Below are positions 2 through 63,724 of a stretch of 64,000 nt of DNA, in pieces. The position numbers and the translations under genes are program-made. The DNA lies in contig NIVC01000946.1 of assembly GCA_002269645.1 (NCBI GenBank), forward strand, positions 124,001-188,000, read 5' to 3'. The notes below the pieces were generated by a model, which saw only the letters and a list, made by a program, of their open reading frames with translations, had not been told where the DNA came from and searched no databases. Position 1 is the first letter of the stretch, and each line of letters begins with the position of its first letter. The DNA is from Macrostomum lignano. Its lineage: Eukaryota.

Positions 2-2736
2 TGCCGGGCGGACACCAGCCGCGGCGAGATGGCCCGCCACCTGCAGATCTGCACCCTGCGCACCTCAGCCGTGGTGCCAGCAGCTGACGTTGCCAGACTG
101 TTGGAGGACATGCGATCCGAGCTGGAGGCGGCCAGGCAGGACTTCATGACCAAGCTGGCCGAGCAGAAGCTCGAGATGGACCTGAGACTCGACGCGCAGC
201 GGCGGCACCTGGTGCAACGGGAGCACTGCCTGCAGGAGCAGCTGGAGGAGATGCGGCGGCTCTACGCGCGGCTCAGCGAGGTCAGTTTCTCCCTACTGAT
301 CTGGTTGGGCATGAGCAACTCTGGCTTTTAGCTTTCAGGCCGGCTCTGCGAGGATTACCCGCCTGACTTGACTGTCTTCTAATCTAAGGGGCGATAAGAA
401 CGGGCGGGGCACCGGCTACAGAGGGGGCGCCAGCTACAGAGGGGAACCGGCTACAGAGGGGGCGCCAGCTACAGAGGGGCACCAGAAGCTACAGAGGGGG
501 CGCCAGAAGCTACAGAGGGGGCACCGGCTACAGAGGGGAACCGGCTACAGAGGGGTCGCCAGAAGCTACAGAGGAGGCGCCAGCTACAGAGGGGGCGCCG
601 TTTACAGAGGGGCACCAGAAGCTACAGAGGGGGCGCCAGCTACAGAGGGGGCGCCGGCTACAGAGGGGGCACCGGCTACAGAGGGGGCACCGGCTACAGA
701 TGGGGCACAGGCTACAGAGGGGCACCGGCTACAGAGGGGGCACCGGCTACAGAGGGGGCGCCGGCTACAGAGGGGGCACAGGCTACAGAGGGGGCACAGC
801 CTACAGAGGGGGCACCAGCTACAGAGGGGGCACAAGCTACAGAGGGGGCACAGGCTACAGAGGGGGCACCGGCTACAGAGGGGGCACAAGCTACAGAGGG
901 GGCGCCAGAAGTTACAGAGGGGGCGCCGGCTACAGAGGGGGCGCCAAAAGCTACAGAGGGGGCACAGGGGGCGCCAGCTACAGAGGAGGCACCAAATACA
1001 GAGGGGGCACCGGCTACAGAGGGGGCGCCAGCTACAGAGGAGGCACCAAATACAGAGGGGGCACCGGCTACAGAGGGGGCGCCAGCTACAGAGGAGGCAC
1101 CGGCTACAGAGGGGCACCGGCTACAGAGGGGGCGCCAGCTACAGAGGGGGCACCGGCTACAGAGGGGGCACAGGCTACAGAGGGGGCACCGGCTACAGAA
1201 GGGGCGCCGGCTACAGAGGGGCACCAGAAGCTACAGAGGGGGCGCCAGAAGCTACAGAGGGGGCACCGGCTACAGAGGGGGCACAAGCTACAGAGGGGGC
1301 ACAGGCTACAGAGGGGGCACAGGCTACAGAGGGGGCACAGGCTACAGAGGGGGCACAAGCTACAGAGGGGGCACCAGAAGCTATAGAGGGGCACAGGCTA
1401 CAGAGGGGGCACAAGCTACAGAGGGGGCACAAGCTACAGAGGGGGCACCAGAAGCTACAGAGGGGGCACAGGCTACAGAGGGGGCACCGGCTACAGAGGG
1501 GGCACCCGCTACAGAGGGGGCACCGGCTACAGAGGGGGCGCCAGCTACAGAGGGGGCACCGGCTACAGAGGGGGCACAGGCTACAGAGGGGGCACAGGCT
1601 ACAGAGGGACCGGCTACAGAGGGGGCACCGGCTACAGAGGAGGCACCGGCTACAGAGGGGGCACCGGCTACAGAGGGGGCGCCAGCTACAGAGGGGGCAC
1701 CGGCTACAGAGGGGCACAGGCTACAGAGGGGGCGCCAGCTACAGAGGGGGCGCCGGCTACAGAGGGGGCACCGGCTACAGAGATGGCACCGGCTACAGAG
1801 GGGGCGCCAGCTACAGAGGGGGCGCCAGAAGCTACAGAGGGGGCGCCGGCTATAGAGGGGGCGCCAGCTACAGAGGGGGCGCCAGAAGTTACAGAGGGGG
1901 CGCCGGCTACAGAGGGGGCGCCAGAAGCTAGAGAGGGGGCAGGGGGCGCCAGCTACAGAGGGGCGCCAGCCACAGAGGGGGCGCCAGCTACAGAGGGGAA
2001 CCGGCTACAGAGGGGTCGCCAGAAGCTACAGAGGAGGCGCCAGCTACAGAGGGGGCGCCGGCTACAGAGGGGCACCAGAAGCTACAGAGGGGGCACCGGC
2101 TACAGAGGGGAACCGGCTACAGAGGGGTCGCCAGAAGCTACAGAGGAGGCGCCAGCTACAGAGGGGGCGCCGGCTACAGAGGGGCACCAGAAGCTACAGA
2201 GGGGGCGCCAGCTACAGAGGGGGCGCCGGCTACAGAGGGGGCACAAGCTACAGAGAGGGCACAGGCTACAGAGGGGGCACAGGCTACAGAGGGACCGGCT
2301 ACAGAGGGGGCACAAGCTACAGAGGGGGCACCGGCTACAGAGGGGGCACCGGCTACAGAGGGGGCACCGGCTACAGAGGGGGCACAGGCTACAGAGGGGG
2401 CACCGGCTACAGAGGGGGCACCGGCTACAGAGGGGGCACCGGCTACAGAGGGGGCACCGGCTACAGAGGGGGTGCCAGCTAAATAGGGGGCGCCATGCAG
2501 TGTTTCATTTGCAATGACGCATGCAAGACAATCACAAGTAATGACCTGAAAATCTGTGACCGCCTGCATCACCTGTCATCTTACAGGACATCAAGAAGCT
2601 GATTCAGCAGGAGAAAACCAGCCGAACGGAGCTGCAGCGGATGGCGCAAGAGAAGGCGGAGCTTCTCCAATTGCTGCACCAGGCTTCCCGCTCGCAGGCG
2701 GTGCAGAAACTGCCGGAAAAAGTGACAGATTTATGA
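2..2736 (+). CDS. 3' end of a TRAF-type zinc finger / coiled-coil protein, RNF151/NRDP1-like by recollection; 5' part outside window
   Basis: Open frame from base 2 (CRADTSRGEMARHLQIC...RLDAQRRHLVQRE...RLSE), donor GT at 281 (phase 0), acceptor ttacag at 2586, terminal exon 2587-2736 in the same phase (DIKKLIQQEKTSRTELQRMAQEKAELLQLL...KVTDL*). The coiled-coil continues across the junction. The family name rests on remembered similarity, not a search. Confidence 0.7.
406..2495. repeat. Intronic GC-rich minisatellite, about 18-bp unit ACCGGCTACAGAGGGGGC with 17-21 bp variants
   Basis: Direct tandem periodicity; explains all repetitive ORFs in 528-2572. Confidence 0.97.
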
Positions 2737-9309: not shown

Positions 9310-9987
9310 TCACGAGCAGCAGCCGCTGCCGCCTTCAGTTTCACCAGTCCCGTTTGCGGTCAGGCGGACAGCTGCTGCTGACGCAGACGAGTTCACTCCC
9401 CGTCCAACCCGGACACCGTCCCAGGCTGGCGACATGCCGGTGTAACGGCCGGCCATGAGCAGGCAGTAGACCCGCTCGGCCAGGCTGCGGAAACAGGCCT
9501 CAACATTGTGGCCGCTGATCGCGCTGGTCTCAATATAAGCCAACCCAAGCTGCTCGGCCAATCCGGACGCTTCGTCCAGGCTAACCGTCCGCTGGCCGGA
9601 CATGTCCGCCTTCTGGCCAACTAGCAGCAGGCCCGGATCCGGACAAGTCATATTCAAACGGGCCTCCTTAAGCCAGGCTGACACGCTACTAAAACTATCC
9701 CGATTAGTGACGTCAAAGACAATGAGAGCGGCTACTGCATTGCGATAATAAGAGCGAGTGATGGACCGGAACTTCTCGTGGCCGGCCGTGTCCCACAGGG
9801 TCAGCTTGATCCGGCTGCCGTCCGGCAGTTGAACTAGGCGAGCAAAGAAATCAACACCGACCGTGGCTTCGCAGGCCGTGTCGGCTGAGCCTTCGACAAA
9901 ATAGCGAACTAGGGACGACTTGCCAACCATGGTGTCGCCAATGATGATCACCCTGAACTGGTAATCGAACAGCGGCCCGGGCAGCAT
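9310..9987 (-). CDS. Rab39: Rab39/Rab42-family small GTPase, single coding exon, 225 aa
   Basis: YQFRVIIIGDTMVGKSSL (G1), TVGVDFFARL (switch I as in Rab39), WDTAGHEKFRSITRSYYRN (G3), GQKAD (G4), ETSA (G5), C-terminal CCS prenylation motif. Confidence 0.88.
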   Translation of the reverse strand: MLPGPLFDYQFRVIIIGDTMVGKSSLVRYFVEGSADTACEATVGVDFFARLVQLPDGSRIKLTLWDTAGHEKFRSITRSYYRNAVAALIVFDVTNRDSFSSVSAWLKEARLNMTCPDPGLLLVGQKADMSGQRTVSLDEASGLAEQLGLAYIETSAISGHNVEACFRSLAERVYCLLMAGRYTGMSPAWDGVRVGRGVNSSASAAAVRLTANGTGETEGGSGCCS

Positions 9988-10135: not shown

Positions 10136-11567
10136 ACAGTAAGGACTGGTGGGTAGCTTAGCCCAGCTTACCGAACTGAACAGTAAGGACTGTTGAGTAG
10201 CTTAGCCCAGCTTACCGAACTGAACAGTAAGGACTGTTGAGTAGCTTAGCCCAGCTTACCGAACTGAACAGTAAGGACTGTTGAGTAGCTTAGCCCAGCT
10301 TATCGAACTGAACAGTAAGGACTGGTGGGTAGCTTAGCCCAGCTTATCGAACTGAACAGTAAGGACTGTTGAGTAGCTTAGCCCAGCTTATCGAACTGAA
10401 CAGTAAGGACTGTTGGGTAGCTTAGCCCAGCTTATCGAACTGAACAGTAAGGACTGTTGAGTAGCTTAGCCCAGCTTATCGAACTGAACAGTAAGGACTG
10501 TTGAGTAGCTTAGCCCAGCTTATCGAACTGAACAGTAAGGACTGTTGAGTAGCTTAGCCCAGCTGACCGAACTGAACAGTAAGGACTGTTGAGTAGCTTA
10601 GCCCAGCTTATCGAACTGAACAGTAAGGACTGTTGAGTAGCTTAGCCCAGCTTACCGAACTGTACAGTAAGGACTGTTGAGTAGCTTAGCCCAGCTGACC
10701 GAACTGAACAGTAAGGACTGTTGAGTAGCTTAGCCCAGCTTATCGAACTGAACAGTAAGGACTGTTGAGTAGCTTAGCCCAGCTGACCGAACTGAACAGT
10801 AAGGACTGTTGAGTAGCTTAGCCCAGCTTATCGAACTGAACAGTAAGGACTGTTGAGTAGCTTAGCCCAGCTGACCGAACTGTACAGTAAGGACTGGTGG
10901 GTAGCTTAGCCCAGCTTATCGAACTGAACAGTAAGGACTGTTGAGTAGCTTAGCCCAGCTTATCGAACTGAACAGTAAGGACTGTTGAGTAGCTTAGCCC
11001 AGCTGACCGAACTGAACAGTAAGGACTGTTGAGTAGCTTAGCCCAGCTGACCGAACTGAACAGTAAGGACTGTTGAGTAGCTTAGCCCAGCTGACCGAAC
11101 TGAACAGTAAGGACTGTTGAGTAGCTTAGCCCAGCTGACCGAACTGAACAGTAAGGACTGTTGAGTAGCTTAGCCCAGCTTATCGAACTGAACAGTAAGG
11201 ACTGTTGAGTAGCTTAGCCCAGCTGACCGAACTGAACAGTAAGGACTGTTGAGTAGCTTAGCCCAGCTGACCGAACTGAACAGTAAGGACTGTTGAGTAG
11301 CTTAGCCCAGCTGACCGAACTGAACAGTAAGGACTGGTGGGTAGCTTAGCCCAGCTGACCGAACTGTACAGTAAGGACTGGTTAGGTAGCTTAGCCCAGC
11401 TGACCGAACTGTACAGTAAGGACTGGTGGGTAGCTTAGCCCAGCTGACCGAACTGTACAGTAAGGACTGGTGGGTAGCTTAGCCCAGCTGACCGAACTGT
11501 ACAGTAAGGACTGGTGGGTAGCTTAGCCCAGCTGACCGAACTGAACAGTAAGACCTGGTAGGTAGGC
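10136..11567. repeat. Homogeneous minisatellite, 44-bp unit CAGTAAGGACTGTTGAGTAGCTTAGCCCAGCTTATCGAACTGAA, about 32 copies, just upstream of Rab39
   Basis: Direct periodicity; each unit has a 6-bp hairpin AACAGT-AAGG-ACTGTT; no spacers. Confidence 0.98.
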
Positions 11568-18346: not shown

Positions 18347-21300
18347 TTAACAGTTGCAGCCGTTTGCCTGCTTGTCGCGGCCTTCCTGCAGACGAGTGCC
18401 TGCGAACAACAGAATAAAAGCACAAGAGTTGATTCTAAAACTATGCACACTTGTTTGCATGTGGCTACTATGAGTACTAGATATATGCTGAATCTTGAGT
18501 TTGCAATTCACTAGCCCGATGATGTTAACTAAAACAAAAAACTGTTGGATTTATGCATCAATGTGCACTATAGTTAGCGCTTATTGGTGTTAGCTAAAAG
18601 TACAATTTATGTTGAATCGTGTCTCAAACTCAAAGTACACAAGCCTATTGATGATATCTAAAAGTACAAGAGGATTAATTCCATCTAAAAGTACACTAGA
18701 CTGACGGTGATAAGCTAAAAGTGCACGAGAAAATTAAATTCATCTAAAAGTATATAAGCTTGCTGATTATAGCTAAAAGTGCGCGAGAGAATGAACTTCA
18801 ATCTAAAAGTAAACTAGCCTGCTGATGATAGCTAAAAGTGCAGATGCTAAACTAAATCTTACTCACCGGCCCCGGCAGCCAAATTAGGATCGCACTCCAG
18901 CGATTCGGCCATCTTGTCGCAGATGACGTCAACCAGTCGTTCGAATACGGCTTTGACGTTGATATTCTCTTTAGCGGAAGTCTCAAAGAACTCGAGGCCT
19001 GCAGATATTTCAGCAATGATAAAATATACTCACTTTTAATTGAAATGTCGGAATATTTTTACTAGATAGTTTATCAGAAAAACACTGCTGATTAAAAATT
19101 TAAGAAATGTTATAATATTAATTCACACTAAATAGTTCCGACATTTTAGGCCACATTAGCAGTTACGAGGAGGATCTCAAATATAAGAATTTCAGCATTT
19201 ACCAATCTCTTCAGCCAATCGCTGGCCGCTTAATTCGCTAATAACTCGATAGTCAGCTAGATCGCACTTGTTGCCAACCAGAACTATGGTGGCATCGTGC
19301 CAAGCGTGGGCTCTGATCTGAGTACACCTTTAGAATAATAGTCAGTAATAAGTATCTTTTAACAACAGATAACATTCCAAGAGAAATAGAAAAATACGCT
19401 TAGGGATATTAGAAAACAAATGCATTAAATTCACTAAGCAATATAGGAAATGCACAGCACTTACTCCTAACTCATTTCATGCATCAGTTGCATAGGAGTG
19501 ACATTTAATTTTGCTCCTAGCATATAAATCGACAGAATAAGACTTATTTAACAATGGATTTCAGTGGAACAGAGTTCAAGCGTGGCAGCTCCGAGAGGGA
19601 GATCACAGTTGGGAGAATCCCGGAGGAGGAATCCCTAAAGAGGAATCTCTACAGGAGACTCCCTAAAAGGGGAATCCCGAAAGGGGAATTCTAAAAGGGA
19701 ATCCCTAAAGTGGAATCCTTAAAGTGGAATCCTTAAAGGGGAATCCCTAAAGGGGAATCCCTAAAGGGGAATCCCTAAAGGGGAATCCCTAAAGGGGAAT
19801 CCCTAAAGGGGAATCCCTAAAGTGGAATCCTTAAAGTGGAATCCCTAAAGGGGAATCCCTAAAGGGGAATCCCTAAAGGGGAATCCCTAAAGGGGAATCC
19901 CTAAAGGGGAATCCCTAAAGGGGAATCCCTAAAGGGGAATCCCTAAAGGGGAATCCCTAAAGGGGAATCCCTAAAGGGGAATCCCTAAAGGGGAATCCCT
20001 AAAGGGGAATCCCTAAAGGGGAATCCCTAAAGGGGAATCCCTAAAGGGGAATCCCTAAAGGGGAATCCCTAAAGGGGAATCCCTAAAGGGGAATCCCTAA
20101 AGGGGAATCTCTAAAGGGGAATCCCTAAATGGGAATCCCTAAAGGGGAATCGCTAGAGGGACATTTTTAAATCAAAATCAGAAAGGGGGAATCCAAAGGG
20201 GAATCTATAAAGTGGAGTCCTAACTAAAAATCTCTAAGGATTTTCTCCACAGGAATTTCCATATATCCGGATAAGAGACCTTAGCAGGGGAATCGCAAAT
20301 AAAGAACTTTTCAAATGTTTTTCTCGAATCGCCACCGTACAATATATAATAAGAAAACACAAATACGGTATATAAACACTTATCTTGTGTTCAATGCCAT
20401 TTTCCGCAAGAAATTGTATCTTTTACACAAAAGTAGAATAGAAGAAGCACAAAAGATTGAAAAACATTAATCACTAATAAAAAGATGGCAATGAAGCAAG
20501 TGAACTGCGGTACAATACCCAGATCATGTGCCAGCCTAGCACCGCGCTCAATGGAGACAATGCGACTATCCTCTAAATCGCACTTGTTACCAATTAGAGC
20601 AATTTTGGCTGTGGACCAGGAGTGAGTCTGTATTGCCGTCACCCTGGGCATGGTAGCGATGCGTATGAGAGGCACCTTTGTTTTAAATAAAACACATGTA
20701 ATAGAAATAAAATCTAAAACGACGAATCCAGTTTTTTAGAAAAAAGGCAAAAAACCATCAAAGAAATAATCAGTTGAACAGCAGGAATACCAATTTGTAC
20801 TGTTTATACCGACATATACTCAGCAAGTTTCAATTCCTCGGAATTCAAAATGCTATTCTAAGATATTCCAATGGGATGTCTATCAAAATCATCAGCGCGG
20901 AATCCTCACTCAAACCACGCTTTGGTAGTTAGTACTTTCACTCTTAACTATTGACTATCAAACTTTAATAAAAAGAACAGTCCAAACAAATTCACCGAAC
21001 CGGAATAAAGAAAAAAGTTAATCGAAGAAGGAAAACTACGCTCGTAATTTGAACCAAAAAAACACCGGGATTTTTTAGGGCTTGGAAATTCGCACCGAGC
21101 TCATTTGCCAGCTTTTGCGCCGTTTTGGTGTCGACTCGGCGCTGACCTGGCTGGCAGTCGCACTTGTTGCCTACCAATACAACAACGGCACCTTGCCAGG
21201 CCTGACCGCGCACCAGCGTCACCCTTTAGTTAGTTGTGTGTGCGTGTGCGGTTTTAGAAGACGCAGTGGTTGGGGTTGAAGTAAACTAATAAATAAACTG

Positions 21301-24300
21301 TACACTAAAGCAAACTCTTGCCCCGACTTCATGTGGACCAGCTGGCAATTATCTTGTCATAGCAAGATCTGTGTATCCCAGCCCTACCCCCACCCCAAAT
21401 TAAAATAAAAGGGGACGAGATTCTACGAGCTATGTACACTAGCCCTACCCCACCCCATTTAAAAGGGGACGAGATTTTATGTACATCAGCCCTACCCTCA
21501 AATAAAAGGGGACGAGATTCTATGTACGCCAGCCCTGTCCCAGGACGAGAATATATGTACCGCCAGCCCTCACCCTGGCCCTCAGATAGATAGATACCGT
21601 GAAGGGGACAAGATTTCACGTACGCTCGTACATTTTATTAATTTTAGCTAGGGAGACTAGGGAGAAGAAAGCCAAGAGATAAAGAAATCAGACGCTACGA
21701 AGTTAACTCCAGCTAAATTTGCATACAAGGAAAACAAAGGTAAAATTTAGATTGACACAAGGGAAACAAATTTCAAAATATATGAATAGTGATATCAGTT
21801 ACAAAAAATAAGTTGCTTTAATATGGTTCCTGCTATATTTTATATTTCCTATAAATTTTAAATTGTAATAATAAAGTGCAATGACAACACTGAACATATA
21901 TAAAAGGTCGGTGTGCACAGGAGCGACAATAAAAGATGCATACAGACACTAATAAAATATTGTACCTTAGTACTCACATATTTTAATACAAGCGACTTAC
22001 CAGTCTTGCACGGCATTAAACGAATCCTCGTTGGTAACGTCGTACATTAGAATAAAGCCCATAGCGCCCCTATAATAGGCTGTGGTGATGGTTCGGTACC
22101 TCTCTTGACCAGCTGTGTCCTAAAAAGTAGTAACAGAAAACGCTATTTATACTACTCATTTTTACTGAAACGATTTTTAATATAGTTTGTTGCAATTTGC
22201 GTCCATTTTGCTATTTTTAAGTTTCGTACGATTCTTAGCTCAAGTTCGGAGATCATGCTTCGGGGCGGATCCGGAGTGATAAAGGAGTGATTCTCAGTAG
22301 ATAGATTGGTAGTGATTCTCAGACTCAGGGGAAGATCGGGAGTGATTCTTGGTCGGCGGATTAGGAGTGATTCTCAACATCAAGGTAAGATCAGAAGTGA
22401 TTCTCAGTGGACGGATCGAGAATGATTATTGCGTGGCGAATCAGGAGTGGTTCTTAGTGGGCGGATCGAGAATGATTATTGCGTGGCGAATCAGGAGTGG
22501 TTCTTAGTGGGCGGAGATCATAGGTGATTCCCAGGGAGAGATCAAGCGTGATTCTAGGGGCAGATCAGGGGTGATTGTCAGGGCGGATCAGGAGTGATTC
22601 TCATGGCGGATCAGGAGTGATTCTCTGGGCGGATCATGGGTGATTTTATGGCGGATGAGGGGTGATTCTCATGGCGAATCAAGAGTGATTCTCAGGGTGG
22701 ATCATAGGTCAGGTGATTTTATGGCGGATGAGGGGTGATTCTCAGCGTGGATCAGGGGTGATTCTCGGGGCGGATGAGGGGGGATTCTCAGGCCGAATCG
22801 GGGTGATTCTCGGGCCGGATCAGGGGTGATTCTCGGGCCGGATCAGGGGTGATTCTAGGGGCGGATCAGGGGTGATTCTAGGGGCGGATCAGGGGTGATT
22901 CTCGGAGCGGATCATGGGTGATTGTTATGTACAAATAAGAATCATTATGAAACAGCGCTTTGCAACTTTGATTTTGATGTGACGGACCTTCCGGATCTGA
23001 CTGCACCATGAAAGCAAGAATGCAAGTAGTTGCAAAGGCTAAGCAGAGTTTGAAATTGACCTGTCGATATAAATTAATAAACCGACCGGGTCCCGGAGGG
23101 CCAATTACTTTGTCGGGTTGAGACGCACAGGAAGTTGCGTCCCAGTGGCAGCGAAATTGATTGCCGCTAGTGGACAAGTTGATAGTCGATTCTATCAAAC
23201 ACGCGACAGTCGCACACGCAAAGGATTTAAGCTAATCTAACGGAATGCATAATAACCTTCAGTGGTTTTGATTATCAGTTGTATGAATTATTACCTTAAG
23301 AAAAAATGAATACAATAGATTGTTACTAATCAATAAACTTCACTCATCATTTTTAGAGTCGTGGAATTAACATATAGGAAATAGATTGAGCGAGATAAAA
23401 TGAGGAGATATAAGATTCATGATAGGCATAAGGAGAAGATTGACAGAAACAAGGGAAACATGTAAGAGTATAAAAGAGGGCGTGATACATGGGTTCTAAG
23501 ATACAGAAGTTTTAGAATACACTAAGGGTCGAGGGATATACAAATTGGTCATCGGAGACAAAATAGAAACGGGTCATGGAAGACACAAATGGTCATAAGA
23601 GATACAGAAGGGTCATAGAAGACACAGATGGGTCATGAGGGACACAGATAGGTCGTATGAGACACAAAAGGGTCATAGGAGACACAGAGAGGTCATAGGA
23701 GACACAAAAGGGTCATAGAAGACACAGATAGGTCATAGGAGACACAGATGGGTCATAGAAGACACAGATAGGTCATAGGAGACACAAAAGGGTCATGGAA
23801 GACACAGATAAGTCATAGGAGACACAGATGGGTCATGAGGGACACAGATAGGTCGTATGAGACACAAAAGGGTCATAAGAGACACAGAATGTCATAGGAG
23901 ACACAGATGGGTCATAAAGGACACAGATAGGTCATAGGAGACACAAAAGGGTCATAGGAGACACAGATGGGTCATAGAAGACACAGATAGGTCATAGGAG
24001 ACACATATAGGCCATAGAAGACACAAAAGGGTCATAGGAGACACATATAGGTAATAGAAGACACAAAAGGGTCATAGGAGACACAGATGGGTCATAGAAG
24101 AAACAAATAGGCCATAGAAGACACAGAAGGGTCATAGGAGACACAGATAGGTCATAGAAGACACAGATAAGTCATAGAAGACACAGATAGGTCATAGAAG
24201 ACACAGATAGGTCATAGAAGACACAAAAGGGTCATAGGAGACCCTGAGTGTCATAGAAGAAACAGAATGGTCATAGGAGACACAGATAGGCCATAGAAGA

Positions 24301-24833
24301 CACAGAAGGGTCATAGGAGACACAGATAGGTAATAGAAGACACAAAAGGGTTATAGAAGACACAAAAGGGTCATAGAAGACACAGATGGGTCATAGAAGA
24401 AACATATAGGCCATAGAAGACACAGAAGGGTCATAGGAGACACAGATAGGTCATAGAAGACACAGAAGGGTCATAGGAGACACAGATAGGTCATAGAAGA
24501 CACAGAAGGGTCATAGGAGACTGGGAGTCATTGAGTACACACGGCGAGTCATGACAAGCGGTTATTGGGGGAGTGGGAGATGTGACCAGAAGCCAGTGAG
24601 AGATGAGGCAATAAAGAGAAGCTACTCACCCAGATCTGCAGCTTGACCCGCTTATCGTGTCTAAAGACGGTCTTGACTTTGAAATCGATGCCAACAGTGG
24701 ACACGAAGGCGGACGTGAAAGAGTCGTCAGCGTAGCGAAACAGAAACGACGTCTTGCCAACGGAGGAATTGCCAATAATCAATAATTTGAACATGTAGTC
24801 AAAGTTCTGATCGGCCGCATCGCGAGATCCCAT
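18347..24833 (-). CDS. Rab3: Rab3 small GTPase, 5 coding exons with a triplicated exon 3
   Basis: Exon 1 24833-24630 ([26 protein letters not shown]...KLQIW), exon 2 22119-22001 ([22 protein letters not shown]...VQDW), exon 3 alternatives, exon 4 18998-18867 ([35 protein letters not shown]), exon 5 18399-18347 ([17 protein letters not shown]). All junctions are GT-AG and phase-consistent; CxC prenylation motif. Confidence 0.96.
18590..18845. repeat. Degenerate repeat with recurring (AG/AT)CTAAAAGT motif, Rab3 intron 4
   Basis: About 8 spaced copies of CTAAAAGT(A/G). Confidence 0.55.
19203..19327 (-). CDS. Rab3: Rab3 alternative exon 3c (125 nt)
   Basis: tctaaag|G...G|gtaaat; encodes (W)[41 protein letters not shown](G); phase 2 in, phase 1 out. 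Confidence 0.9.
19621..20220. repeat. Minisatellite, 14-bp unit GGGGAATCCCTAAA, between Rab3 exons 3b and 3c
   Basis: About 30 near-perfect units with degenerate flanks; the unit is quasi-palindromic. Confidence 0.97.
20519..20643 (-). CDS. Rab3: Rab3 alternative exon 3b (125 nt)
   Basis: gcccag|G...G|gtattg; encodes (W)[41 protein letters not shown](G); phase 2 in, phase 1 out. Confidence 0.86.
21096..21223 (-). CDS. Rab3: Rab3 alternative exon 3a (128 nt)
   Basis: ctaaag|G...G|gtgcga; encodes (W)[42 protein letters not shown](G); phase 2 in, phase 1 out. Confidence 0.82.
21345..21590. repeat. Short degenerate repeat (about 50-60 bp, 4 copies) CCCTACCCCCACCCC...AAAAGGGGACGAGATT
   Basis: Four diverged copies between Rab3 exon 2 and exon 3a. 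Confidence 0.75.
22255..22925. repeat. Degenerate minisatellite, about 21-bp unit GGCGGATCAGGGGTGATTCTC
   Basis: Tandem periodicity in Rab3 intron 1. Confidence 0.92.
23570..24520. repeat. Minisatellite, 20-bp unit GTCATAG(A/G)AGACACAGATAG
   Basis: About 47 tandem units in Rab3 intron 1. Confidence 0.97.

Positions 24834-45245: not shown

Positions 45246-63724
<18,479 letters not shown>

Follow-up and report, generated by a model that had tools for sequence, protein, structure and literature searches.

The stretch of DNA analysed here, a window of 64,000 nucleotides (nt) on contig NIVC01000946.1 of assembly GCA_002269645.1 of the flatworm Macrostomum lignano (positions 124,001 to 188,000 of the forward strand), carries on its minus strand a Rab3 gene in which the third coding exon is present in three tandem copies, referred to below as 3a, 3b and 3c. 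The exon model was derived from a tblastn search with a Rab3 probe over the full 64-kb window, followed by reading of the minus strand and assembly of the exons (Table 1; positions are those of the window). Exon 1 was found to share 97% identity with the probe, every exon with an upstream intron is preceded by an AG acceptor, and all exons except exon 5 are followed by a GT donor. The exon and junction coordinates given in a first-pass annotation of this DNA, which had been made from the letters alone, proved to be exact in every case when the minus strand was re-read. The three exon-3 copies are separated by introns of 452 nt (3a to 3b) and 1191 nt (3b to 3c), and a fourth copy was not detected by tblastn anywhere in the 64-kb window.

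All three copies are entered in phase 2, left in phase 1 and free of in-frame stop codons, such that the TG at the end of exon 2 is completed by the first G of whichever copy follows to give a Trp codon, while the last G of the copy and the GC at the start of exon 4 form a Gly codon. Assembly of all possible inclusion combinations revealed that exactly one copy yields an open reading frame (ORF) of 211 (3a) or 210 amino acids (3b, 3c), whereas inclusion of zero, two or three copies results in a frameshift and early stop codons, because the length of each copy leaves a remainder of two nucleotides when divided by three. Exon lengths, splice sites, phases and the resulting frame rule were thus reproduced as the first-pass annotation had described them. 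We consider it probable that the tandem-duplicated third coding exon forms a cluster of three alternative exons that are used one at a time. According to this reading, the spliceosome would join exon 2 to either 3a, 3b or 3c and the chosen exon to exon 4, giving rise to three Rab3 proteins of 211, 210 and 210 amino acids. The P-loop, both switch regions, helix alpha5 and the prenylated tail would be common to all of them, and the differences would lie at the end of helix alpha3, in the alpha3-beta5 loop (the second Rab complementarity-determining region, RabCDR2), in the loop following NKCD and in helix alpha4. Exclusive use would be set at least by the reading frame, and transcripts with a wrong combination of copies would be expected to undergo nonsense-mediated decay.

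Table 1. Exons of the Rab3 gene and further features of the window, with positions counted from its first nucleotide; a slash marks an exon-intron boundary
Feature	Positions	Strand	Length (nt)	Acceptor	Donor	Remarks
Rab3 exon 1	24833-24630	(-)	204		GTGAGT	ATG at 24833; ends KLQIW
Rab3 exon 2	22119-22001	(-)	119		GTAAGT	ends NAVQD + TG (CAA GAC TG/gtaagt), phase 2
Rab3 exon 3a	21223-21096	(-)	128	...aactaactaaag	GTGCGA	61% GC
Rab3 exon 3b	20643-20519	(-)	125	...ccatgcccag	GTATTG	
Rab3 exon 3c	19327-19203	(-)	125	...ttattctaaag	GTAAAT	
Rab3 exon 4	18998-18867	(-)	132		GTGAGT	opens GC CTC GAG TTC TTT; entered in phase 1
Rab3 exon 5	18399-18347	(-)	53			stop codon; encodes C-terminal CXC prenylation motif
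Rab-like gene	9451-9969	(-)				apparently intronless
Minisatellite	10136-11552					44 bp x 32; just upstream of the Rab-like gene
Minisatellite, Rab3 intron between 3b and 3c	19628-20160					14-mer x 38
Minisatellite, Rab3 intron 1	23571-24521					20/40-mer x 48
Further Rab3-intron array	22516-22929					
Further Rab3-intron array	21430-21536					
Tandem array	406-2491					18-mer x 114; near-perfect, G+C-rich
Tandem array	50983-52554					54-mer x 29; near-perfect, 99% identity

The assignment of the gene to Rab3, already proposed in the first-pass annotation, is well founded. Its closest match among solved structures was Rab-3C (E = 2e-105), and the group of matches comprising Rab-3C, Rab-3B, fly Rab-3 and Rab3A extended from E = 2e-105 to 5e-91, with Rab8 following at 2e-64; the complex of Rab3A with rabphilin (1ZBD) was among the top structures. 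The top matches in protein searches all bear the name Rab-3, and the Pfam family Ras (PF00071) was matched by all three predicted isoforms with E-values of 1e-59 to 4e-62, with the G-domain motifs, including SAK, being readable. The protein ends in ...NGCNC followed by the stop codon, which corresponds to a CXC prenylation motif. The canonical YSWDN loop (RabCDR2/RabSF3), which neodermatan flatworms share with the other canonical Rab3 sequences compared, occurs in none of the three copies; the corresponding residues are QAWQG in 3a, HSWST in 3b and HAWHD in 3c. Since no canonical M. lignano Rab3 was found among the best 120 matches of two full-length searches, the gene described here is probably the sole Rab3 of this animal.

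The translations of the three copies retain the loop Trp and the GNKCD motif, as had been noted before, and the codons for GNKCD differ among the copies at synonymous third positions only. A degenerate pattern for this motif (GGNAAYAARTGYGAY) occurs three times in the window, compared with 0.01 occurrences expected by chance. Pairwise identities among the copies amount to 37-49% at the amino acid level and 51-54% at the nucleotide level, which agrees with the earlier estimate that roughly half or more of the residues differ. The proportion of synonymous differences between copies (0.55-0.83) is near saturation, while that of non-synonymous differences is 0.38-0.43. Because the synonymous differences are this close to saturation, the comparison indicates that the exon-3 duplications are old. 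The least saturated pair is 3a/3b, both members of which begin with GGTGACG, and these two may represent the younger pair; 3a is the most divergent copy and contains one extra codon.

As a reference for conservation, an alignment of 31 exon-3 sequences from other animals was used, in which 19 columns are at least 90% conserved and 23 are variable. Of the conserved columns, 14-15 out of 19 are retained in every M. lignano copy, but the majority residue is found at just 5-10 of the 23 variable ones (Fisher p for conserved versus variable columns: 0.001 for 3a, 0.02 for 3b and 0.005 for 3c). Furthermore, 3a, 3b and 3c are each open in the coding frame only. Judged from these sequences, such a conservation pattern would be expected if the exons had been translated during most of the period that has passed since their duplication.

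A second genomic copy of the locus was identified on contig NIVC01003411.1 (locus L001), which is collinear with positions 7200-34200 of the window across a kinase gene, Rab3, a RING-finger gene and the Rab-like gene, and which may represent either an allelic version or a recent duplication. It carries 3a, 3b and 3c intact and in the same order, with 0/128, 0/125 and 2/125 differences, respectively. Exon 1 is unchanged, and the Rab3 proteins of the two copies are distinguished by G>C in 3c, by E>D and by an extra Ser before the CXC tail. The genome is very repeat-rich and holds this locus in two near-identical copies, which raises the suspicion, also named in the first-pass annotation as a refuting condition, that the three exons were created by the assembly, or that they belong to a separate Rab gene. 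The same three exons are arranged in the same order on two different contigs, and an assembly artefact is therefore excluded; moreover, copies which are identical at little more than half of their nucleotides do not represent a collapsed or expanded repeat. There are no other Rab exons between exon 2 and exon 4, and the exon phases fit this gene alone. We thus assign practically no probability to either of these explanations.

The comparison of the two genomic copies also provided a measure of constraint on 3a, which is located in the most divergent stretch and shows 0/128 changes versus 3.1% in the 200 nt flanking it on either side, where indels are found as well (P about 0.02-0.03, post hoc). 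This is a modest signal, suggesting that 3a is constrained relative to its flanks.

Duplication of the very same exon was encountered in other spiralians. Tandem pairs of exon-3-like segments are seen in the gene models of two molluscs, Batillaria and Nucella, and of two rotifers, Adineta and Didymodactylos. In many mollusc isoform models and in one model of the brachiopod Lingula, an alternative exon of the 'TQIKTHAWSNA' type replaces the canonical 'TQIKTYSWDNAQV' exon, the rest of these proteins resembling ordinary Rab3, and a protein model of the bryozoan Watersipora reads LTNIQTHAWPSTSVVLCGNKCD. At the genomic level, a THAW-type exon lies about 700 nt ahead of the canonical exon in Batillaria, with boundaries (TG/gt, ag/G...G/gt, ag/GG) identical to those in the window. 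In the nemertean Tubulanus VTQIKTHAWEDAQVLLVGNKCD precedes the canonical exon, and in the rotifer Adineta the canonical exon is followed by VLQIKTHSWEKTPVMLIGNKCD. The intron phases of the duplicated exon are the same as in M. lignano in all three genomes.

Inclusion of the alternative copy by itself was observed in many mollusc protein models, in those of Lingula and Watersipora, and also in a contig from a bivalve (SRR19746222_19199, assembled from public sequencing data), which contains an uninterrupted Rab3 ORF of 219 codons with the alternative exon alone. Because introns interrupt the Rab3 genes of the genomes examined, we take this contig to be a spliced transcript. The deposited models of Batillaria (L003, 15999-16951) and Adineta (L002, 6649-7005) hold both exons by way of intron read-through, e.g. 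...DLGMPLKMLPRPRLRTVPWCTQIKTYSW..., and the tandem exons seem to have misled annotation in the two-exon Rab3 models of molluscs and rotifers. The canonical exon is present in neodermatan flatworms, and a single copy was found in Schistosoma japonicum over 10 kb upstream of it and downstream as far as exon 4 (7.7 kb), a range that did not reach exon 2. For the annelid Dimorphilus, a pattern count likewise returned one exon-3 copy.

The two-copy cassette of these spiralians and the cluster of M. lignano share the exon concerned, its length of 125 nt, the positions and phases of the introns (TG/G ... G/G) and the part of the protein that is swapped. They differ in that M. lignano has three copies and no canonical YSWDN copy, and in the order of the exons, the HAW-like copy being the last (3') in M. 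lignano, but the first in the mollusc and the nemertean. Among the three copies, 3c resembles the lophotrochozoan alternative exon by its H-A-W signature and its CTQI start, and shares 62% identity with the alternative exon of Batillaria. 3b has T-H-S-W and LIGNKCD in common with the second rotifer exon and ...RG.RLAH.LG in common with the canonical flatworm exon, to which it is the nearest of the three (60% identity to Schistosoma), while 3a is close to no exon in particular (45-52% identity). Over 42 residues at saturation, the identities between the copies and the canonical and alternative-type exons compared (45-62%) do not discriminate between a single ancient cassette that was shared and repeated, independent duplication of the exon. 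By its anatomy, we interpret the arrangement in the window as a three-copy version of the Rab3 cassette of two exons that is found in several spiralian phyla. The first-pass annotation named no known case of a triple cassette in Rab3, and no paper on a Rab3 cassette was found here. The two-copy form, however, occurs in molluscs and rotifers as well as in a brachiopod, a nemertean and a bryozoan, which makes the arrangement less singular than had been thought.

The use of 3c in M. lignano is documented by deposited gene models. A search with the 3b isoform led to a M. lignano protein whose cluster includes PAA74454.1 (BOX15_Mlig010871g2). This protein, which lies on NIVC01000946.1, is exactly the 3c isoform, save for a prefix of five alanines originating from the 5' leader. 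Over 901 nt covering 3a and 3b, the contig and the window are 100% identical; an insect origin of the gene, to which the fly-like exons 1 and 2 might have pointed, is rejected by the exact match to M. lignano. Several observations count against the single use of all three copies and have to be weighed at this point. All three deposited models (PAA74454.1, PAA51520.1 and UniProt A0A1I8HI31) carry 3c. No record of a 3a or 3b isoform was obtained by exact look-up of nine variants and by homology searches, although this absence is weak evidence, because the collection searched seems to be without transcript-derived proteins of Macrostomum; one short-query homology search for 3a/3b returned short proteins only (at most 157 amino acids) and was little informative. 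The dN/dS ratio of 3a versus 3b is 0.64, which fits relaxed constraint on one of them. The acceptor of 3a has a poor pyrimidine tract, and its acceptor region is affected by an indel of 4 nt that distinguishes the second genomic copy from the window. The comparison of these two copies is powerless for 3b and 3c, because their Rab3 introns differ by substitutions at just 1.1% of positions. Finally, a search for docking/selector RNA pairing gave duplex energies no better than those of shuffled controls (z -1.6 to +2.8).

In view of these points, the most serious competing explanation is that only 3c, or 3c together with 3b, is spliced in, whereas the remainder (most likely 3a) would be unused relics of duplication that are intact because their use was lost recently. 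The confinement of the deposited models to 3c would be accounted for in this way, as would the divergence of 3a, its extra codon, its poor acceptor and the indel nearby, and the little power of the comparison between the genomic copies leaves room for such relics. However, reading frames, splice sites, GNKCD and 14-15 of the 19 conserved columns have been kept while synonymous sites became saturated, which is unlike an exon that has long been dead. The unchanged 128 nt of 3a amid flanks differing by 3% point in the same direction, and the two-exon cassettes of other phyla show each copy used alone. On balance, we regard loss of use as unlikely, though with a share of probability that is far from negligible, and we favor single use of all three copies, including 3a and 3b, as the better account of this locus.

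Among the deposited models, A0A1I8HI31 (479 amino acids, about 24833-13800 of the window) has Rab3 exons 1-4 fused to a long non-Rab C-terminal part with a RING-finger-like end; the neighboring RING-finger gene has probably been merged into this model to form a chimera.

With respect to how one copy might be selected, the donors of all three copies are non-consensus, whereas those of exons 1, 2 and 4 match the consensus (GTGAGT or GTAAGT); donor weakness of this kind is typical of exons under regulation. The same feature, together with the early stop codon that follows from any double inclusion, would also suit a role of 3a and/or 3b as poison exons, which would be included along with 3c, trigger nonsense-mediated decay and thereby tune the amount of Rab3. 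Such a function needs no conservation of the protein sequence, yet 3a and 3b keep residues critical for the Rab fold, their GNKCD differs from that of 3c only synonymously, and the homologous exons of other phyla are translated. We therefore consider poison exons improbable, well behind the loss of use discussed above, and return to the inclusion of one copy at a time.

Clusters of three or more tandem alternative exons with inclusion of a single one are known from arthropods (exon 6 of Dscam, 14-3-3 zeta), where docking-site/selector RNA pairing operates. The Rab3 cluster of M. lignano differs from these in that no complementarity above that of shuffled sequences was found, and the frame rule alone can explain exclusivity. 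When the region was scanned for inverted repeats, a few short AT-rich pairs were obtained that involve 21930-21971, just downstream of exon 2. The arms at 20504-20517, 20337-20353 and 19349-19361, near 3b and 3c, all pair with this segment and one of them overlaps the 3b donor; they are not significant relative to shuffles. Steric exclusion, as it is understood, requires introns too short to be spliced and offers no explanation here, since the introns between the copies measure 452 and 1191 nt.

The protein segment affected by the exchange was located with an AlphaFold2 model of the 3a isoform, which was built from a 20-sequence alignment and, being poor overall (pLDDT 56), was used just for the secondary structure of exon 3. 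In this part of the model (pLDDT 63-90), a helix at residues 99-115, a strand at 121-127 and a helix at 140-150 were predicted, matching the earlier description of the exon as comprising the end of alpha3, the alpha3-beta5 loop, beta5 with the G4 motif (NKCD) and alpha4. In fly Rab3, residues WDN124-126 have been described as 'the majority of the alpha3-beta5 loop' and as the second RabCDR, contacting rabphilin (PMC4552854), in agreement with the role that the first-pass annotation had ascribed to this loop. Rab3A contacts the SGAWFF element of rabphilin through three RabCDRs, the second of which is overlapped by RabSF3 (PMC9308819). The counterparts of the canonical W-DN in M. lignano are W-QG (3a), W-ST (3b) and W-HD (3c), and a change in effector specificity among the predicted isoforms is plausible. 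Caution is warranted, however, because exchange of WDN for AAA in fly Rab3 left its function at the neuromuscular junction unimpaired (PMC4552854).

Tandem mutually exclusive exons as such are already known from other Rab genes. Human RAB6A and RAB6A' arise from mutually exclusive duplicated exons, the two copies of which differ by three residues near switch II. The RAB6A pair is mentioned in PMC1950890. Like the copies proposed here for Rab3, these are used singly, and the RAB6A isoforms differ in partner binding; unlike RAB6A, M. lignano Rab3 has three copies, and more than half of the 42 residues differ, in alpha3, RabCDR2 and alpha4. The vertebrate paralogues RAB3A-D resemble the predicted isoforms in forming a set of Rab3 proteins whose switch regions are nearly identical and whose differences lie elsewhere, but they arose by duplication of the whole gene, and none of the four has lost the canonical YSWDN loop, which is also seen in the structure alignment for Rab-3C. 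In RAB37, a member of the same exocytic group of Rabs, substitution of homologous exons by tandem exon duplication has been reported for vertebrates and Drosophila (Martinez-Gomez et al. 2021, PMC8373072). This is another gene, which resembles the Rab3 locus in the swapping of homologous tandem exons. Our literature search returned no paper on alternative Rab3 exons in any animal, but the isoforms annotated publicly for molluscs and other lophotrochozoans imply a Rab3 cassette. What is new in M. lignano is an unannotated, three-member version of the cassette without the canonical loop.

Further features of the window include repeats and a second Rab-like gene. The latter matched the Pfam family Ras (E = 1.6e-47), shares 41% identity with Rab3 and has a minisatellite just upstream; on L001, a Ras-family gene of 225 amino acids is called at the corresponding place. 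The Rab3 introns are rich in minisatellites (Table 1). Minisatellite copy numbers differ between the window and L001, and most alignment gaps are explained by this. Two very large, near-perfect tandem arrays, an 18-mer and a 54-mer, are responsible for the extreme composition of the two intervals they occupy.

Rab3 is the classic Rab of synaptic vesicles and secretory granules, and to our knowledge it is usually treated outside the vertebrates as one gene giving one protein. More tentatively than the single use of the copies itself, we suggest that swapping of exon 3 could be an ancient spiralian trait which Macrostomum may have extended to three functional isoforms while losing YSWDN, and that the isoforms may have cell-type-specific preferences for effectors or regulators. 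In practical terms, the deposited M. lignano models omit two probable coding exons, and several mollusc and rotifer models appear to fuse both exons wrongly. A conserved cassette of this kind would constitute a natural experiment on helix alpha4 and on the alpha3-beta5 loop, one of three regions contacting rabphilin. It would also mean that Rab3 was diversified by splicing in spiralians and by gene duplication in vertebrates, and isoforms with cell-type-specific preferences, if they exist, would represent a splicing counterpart of the vertebrate RAB3A-D paralogues.

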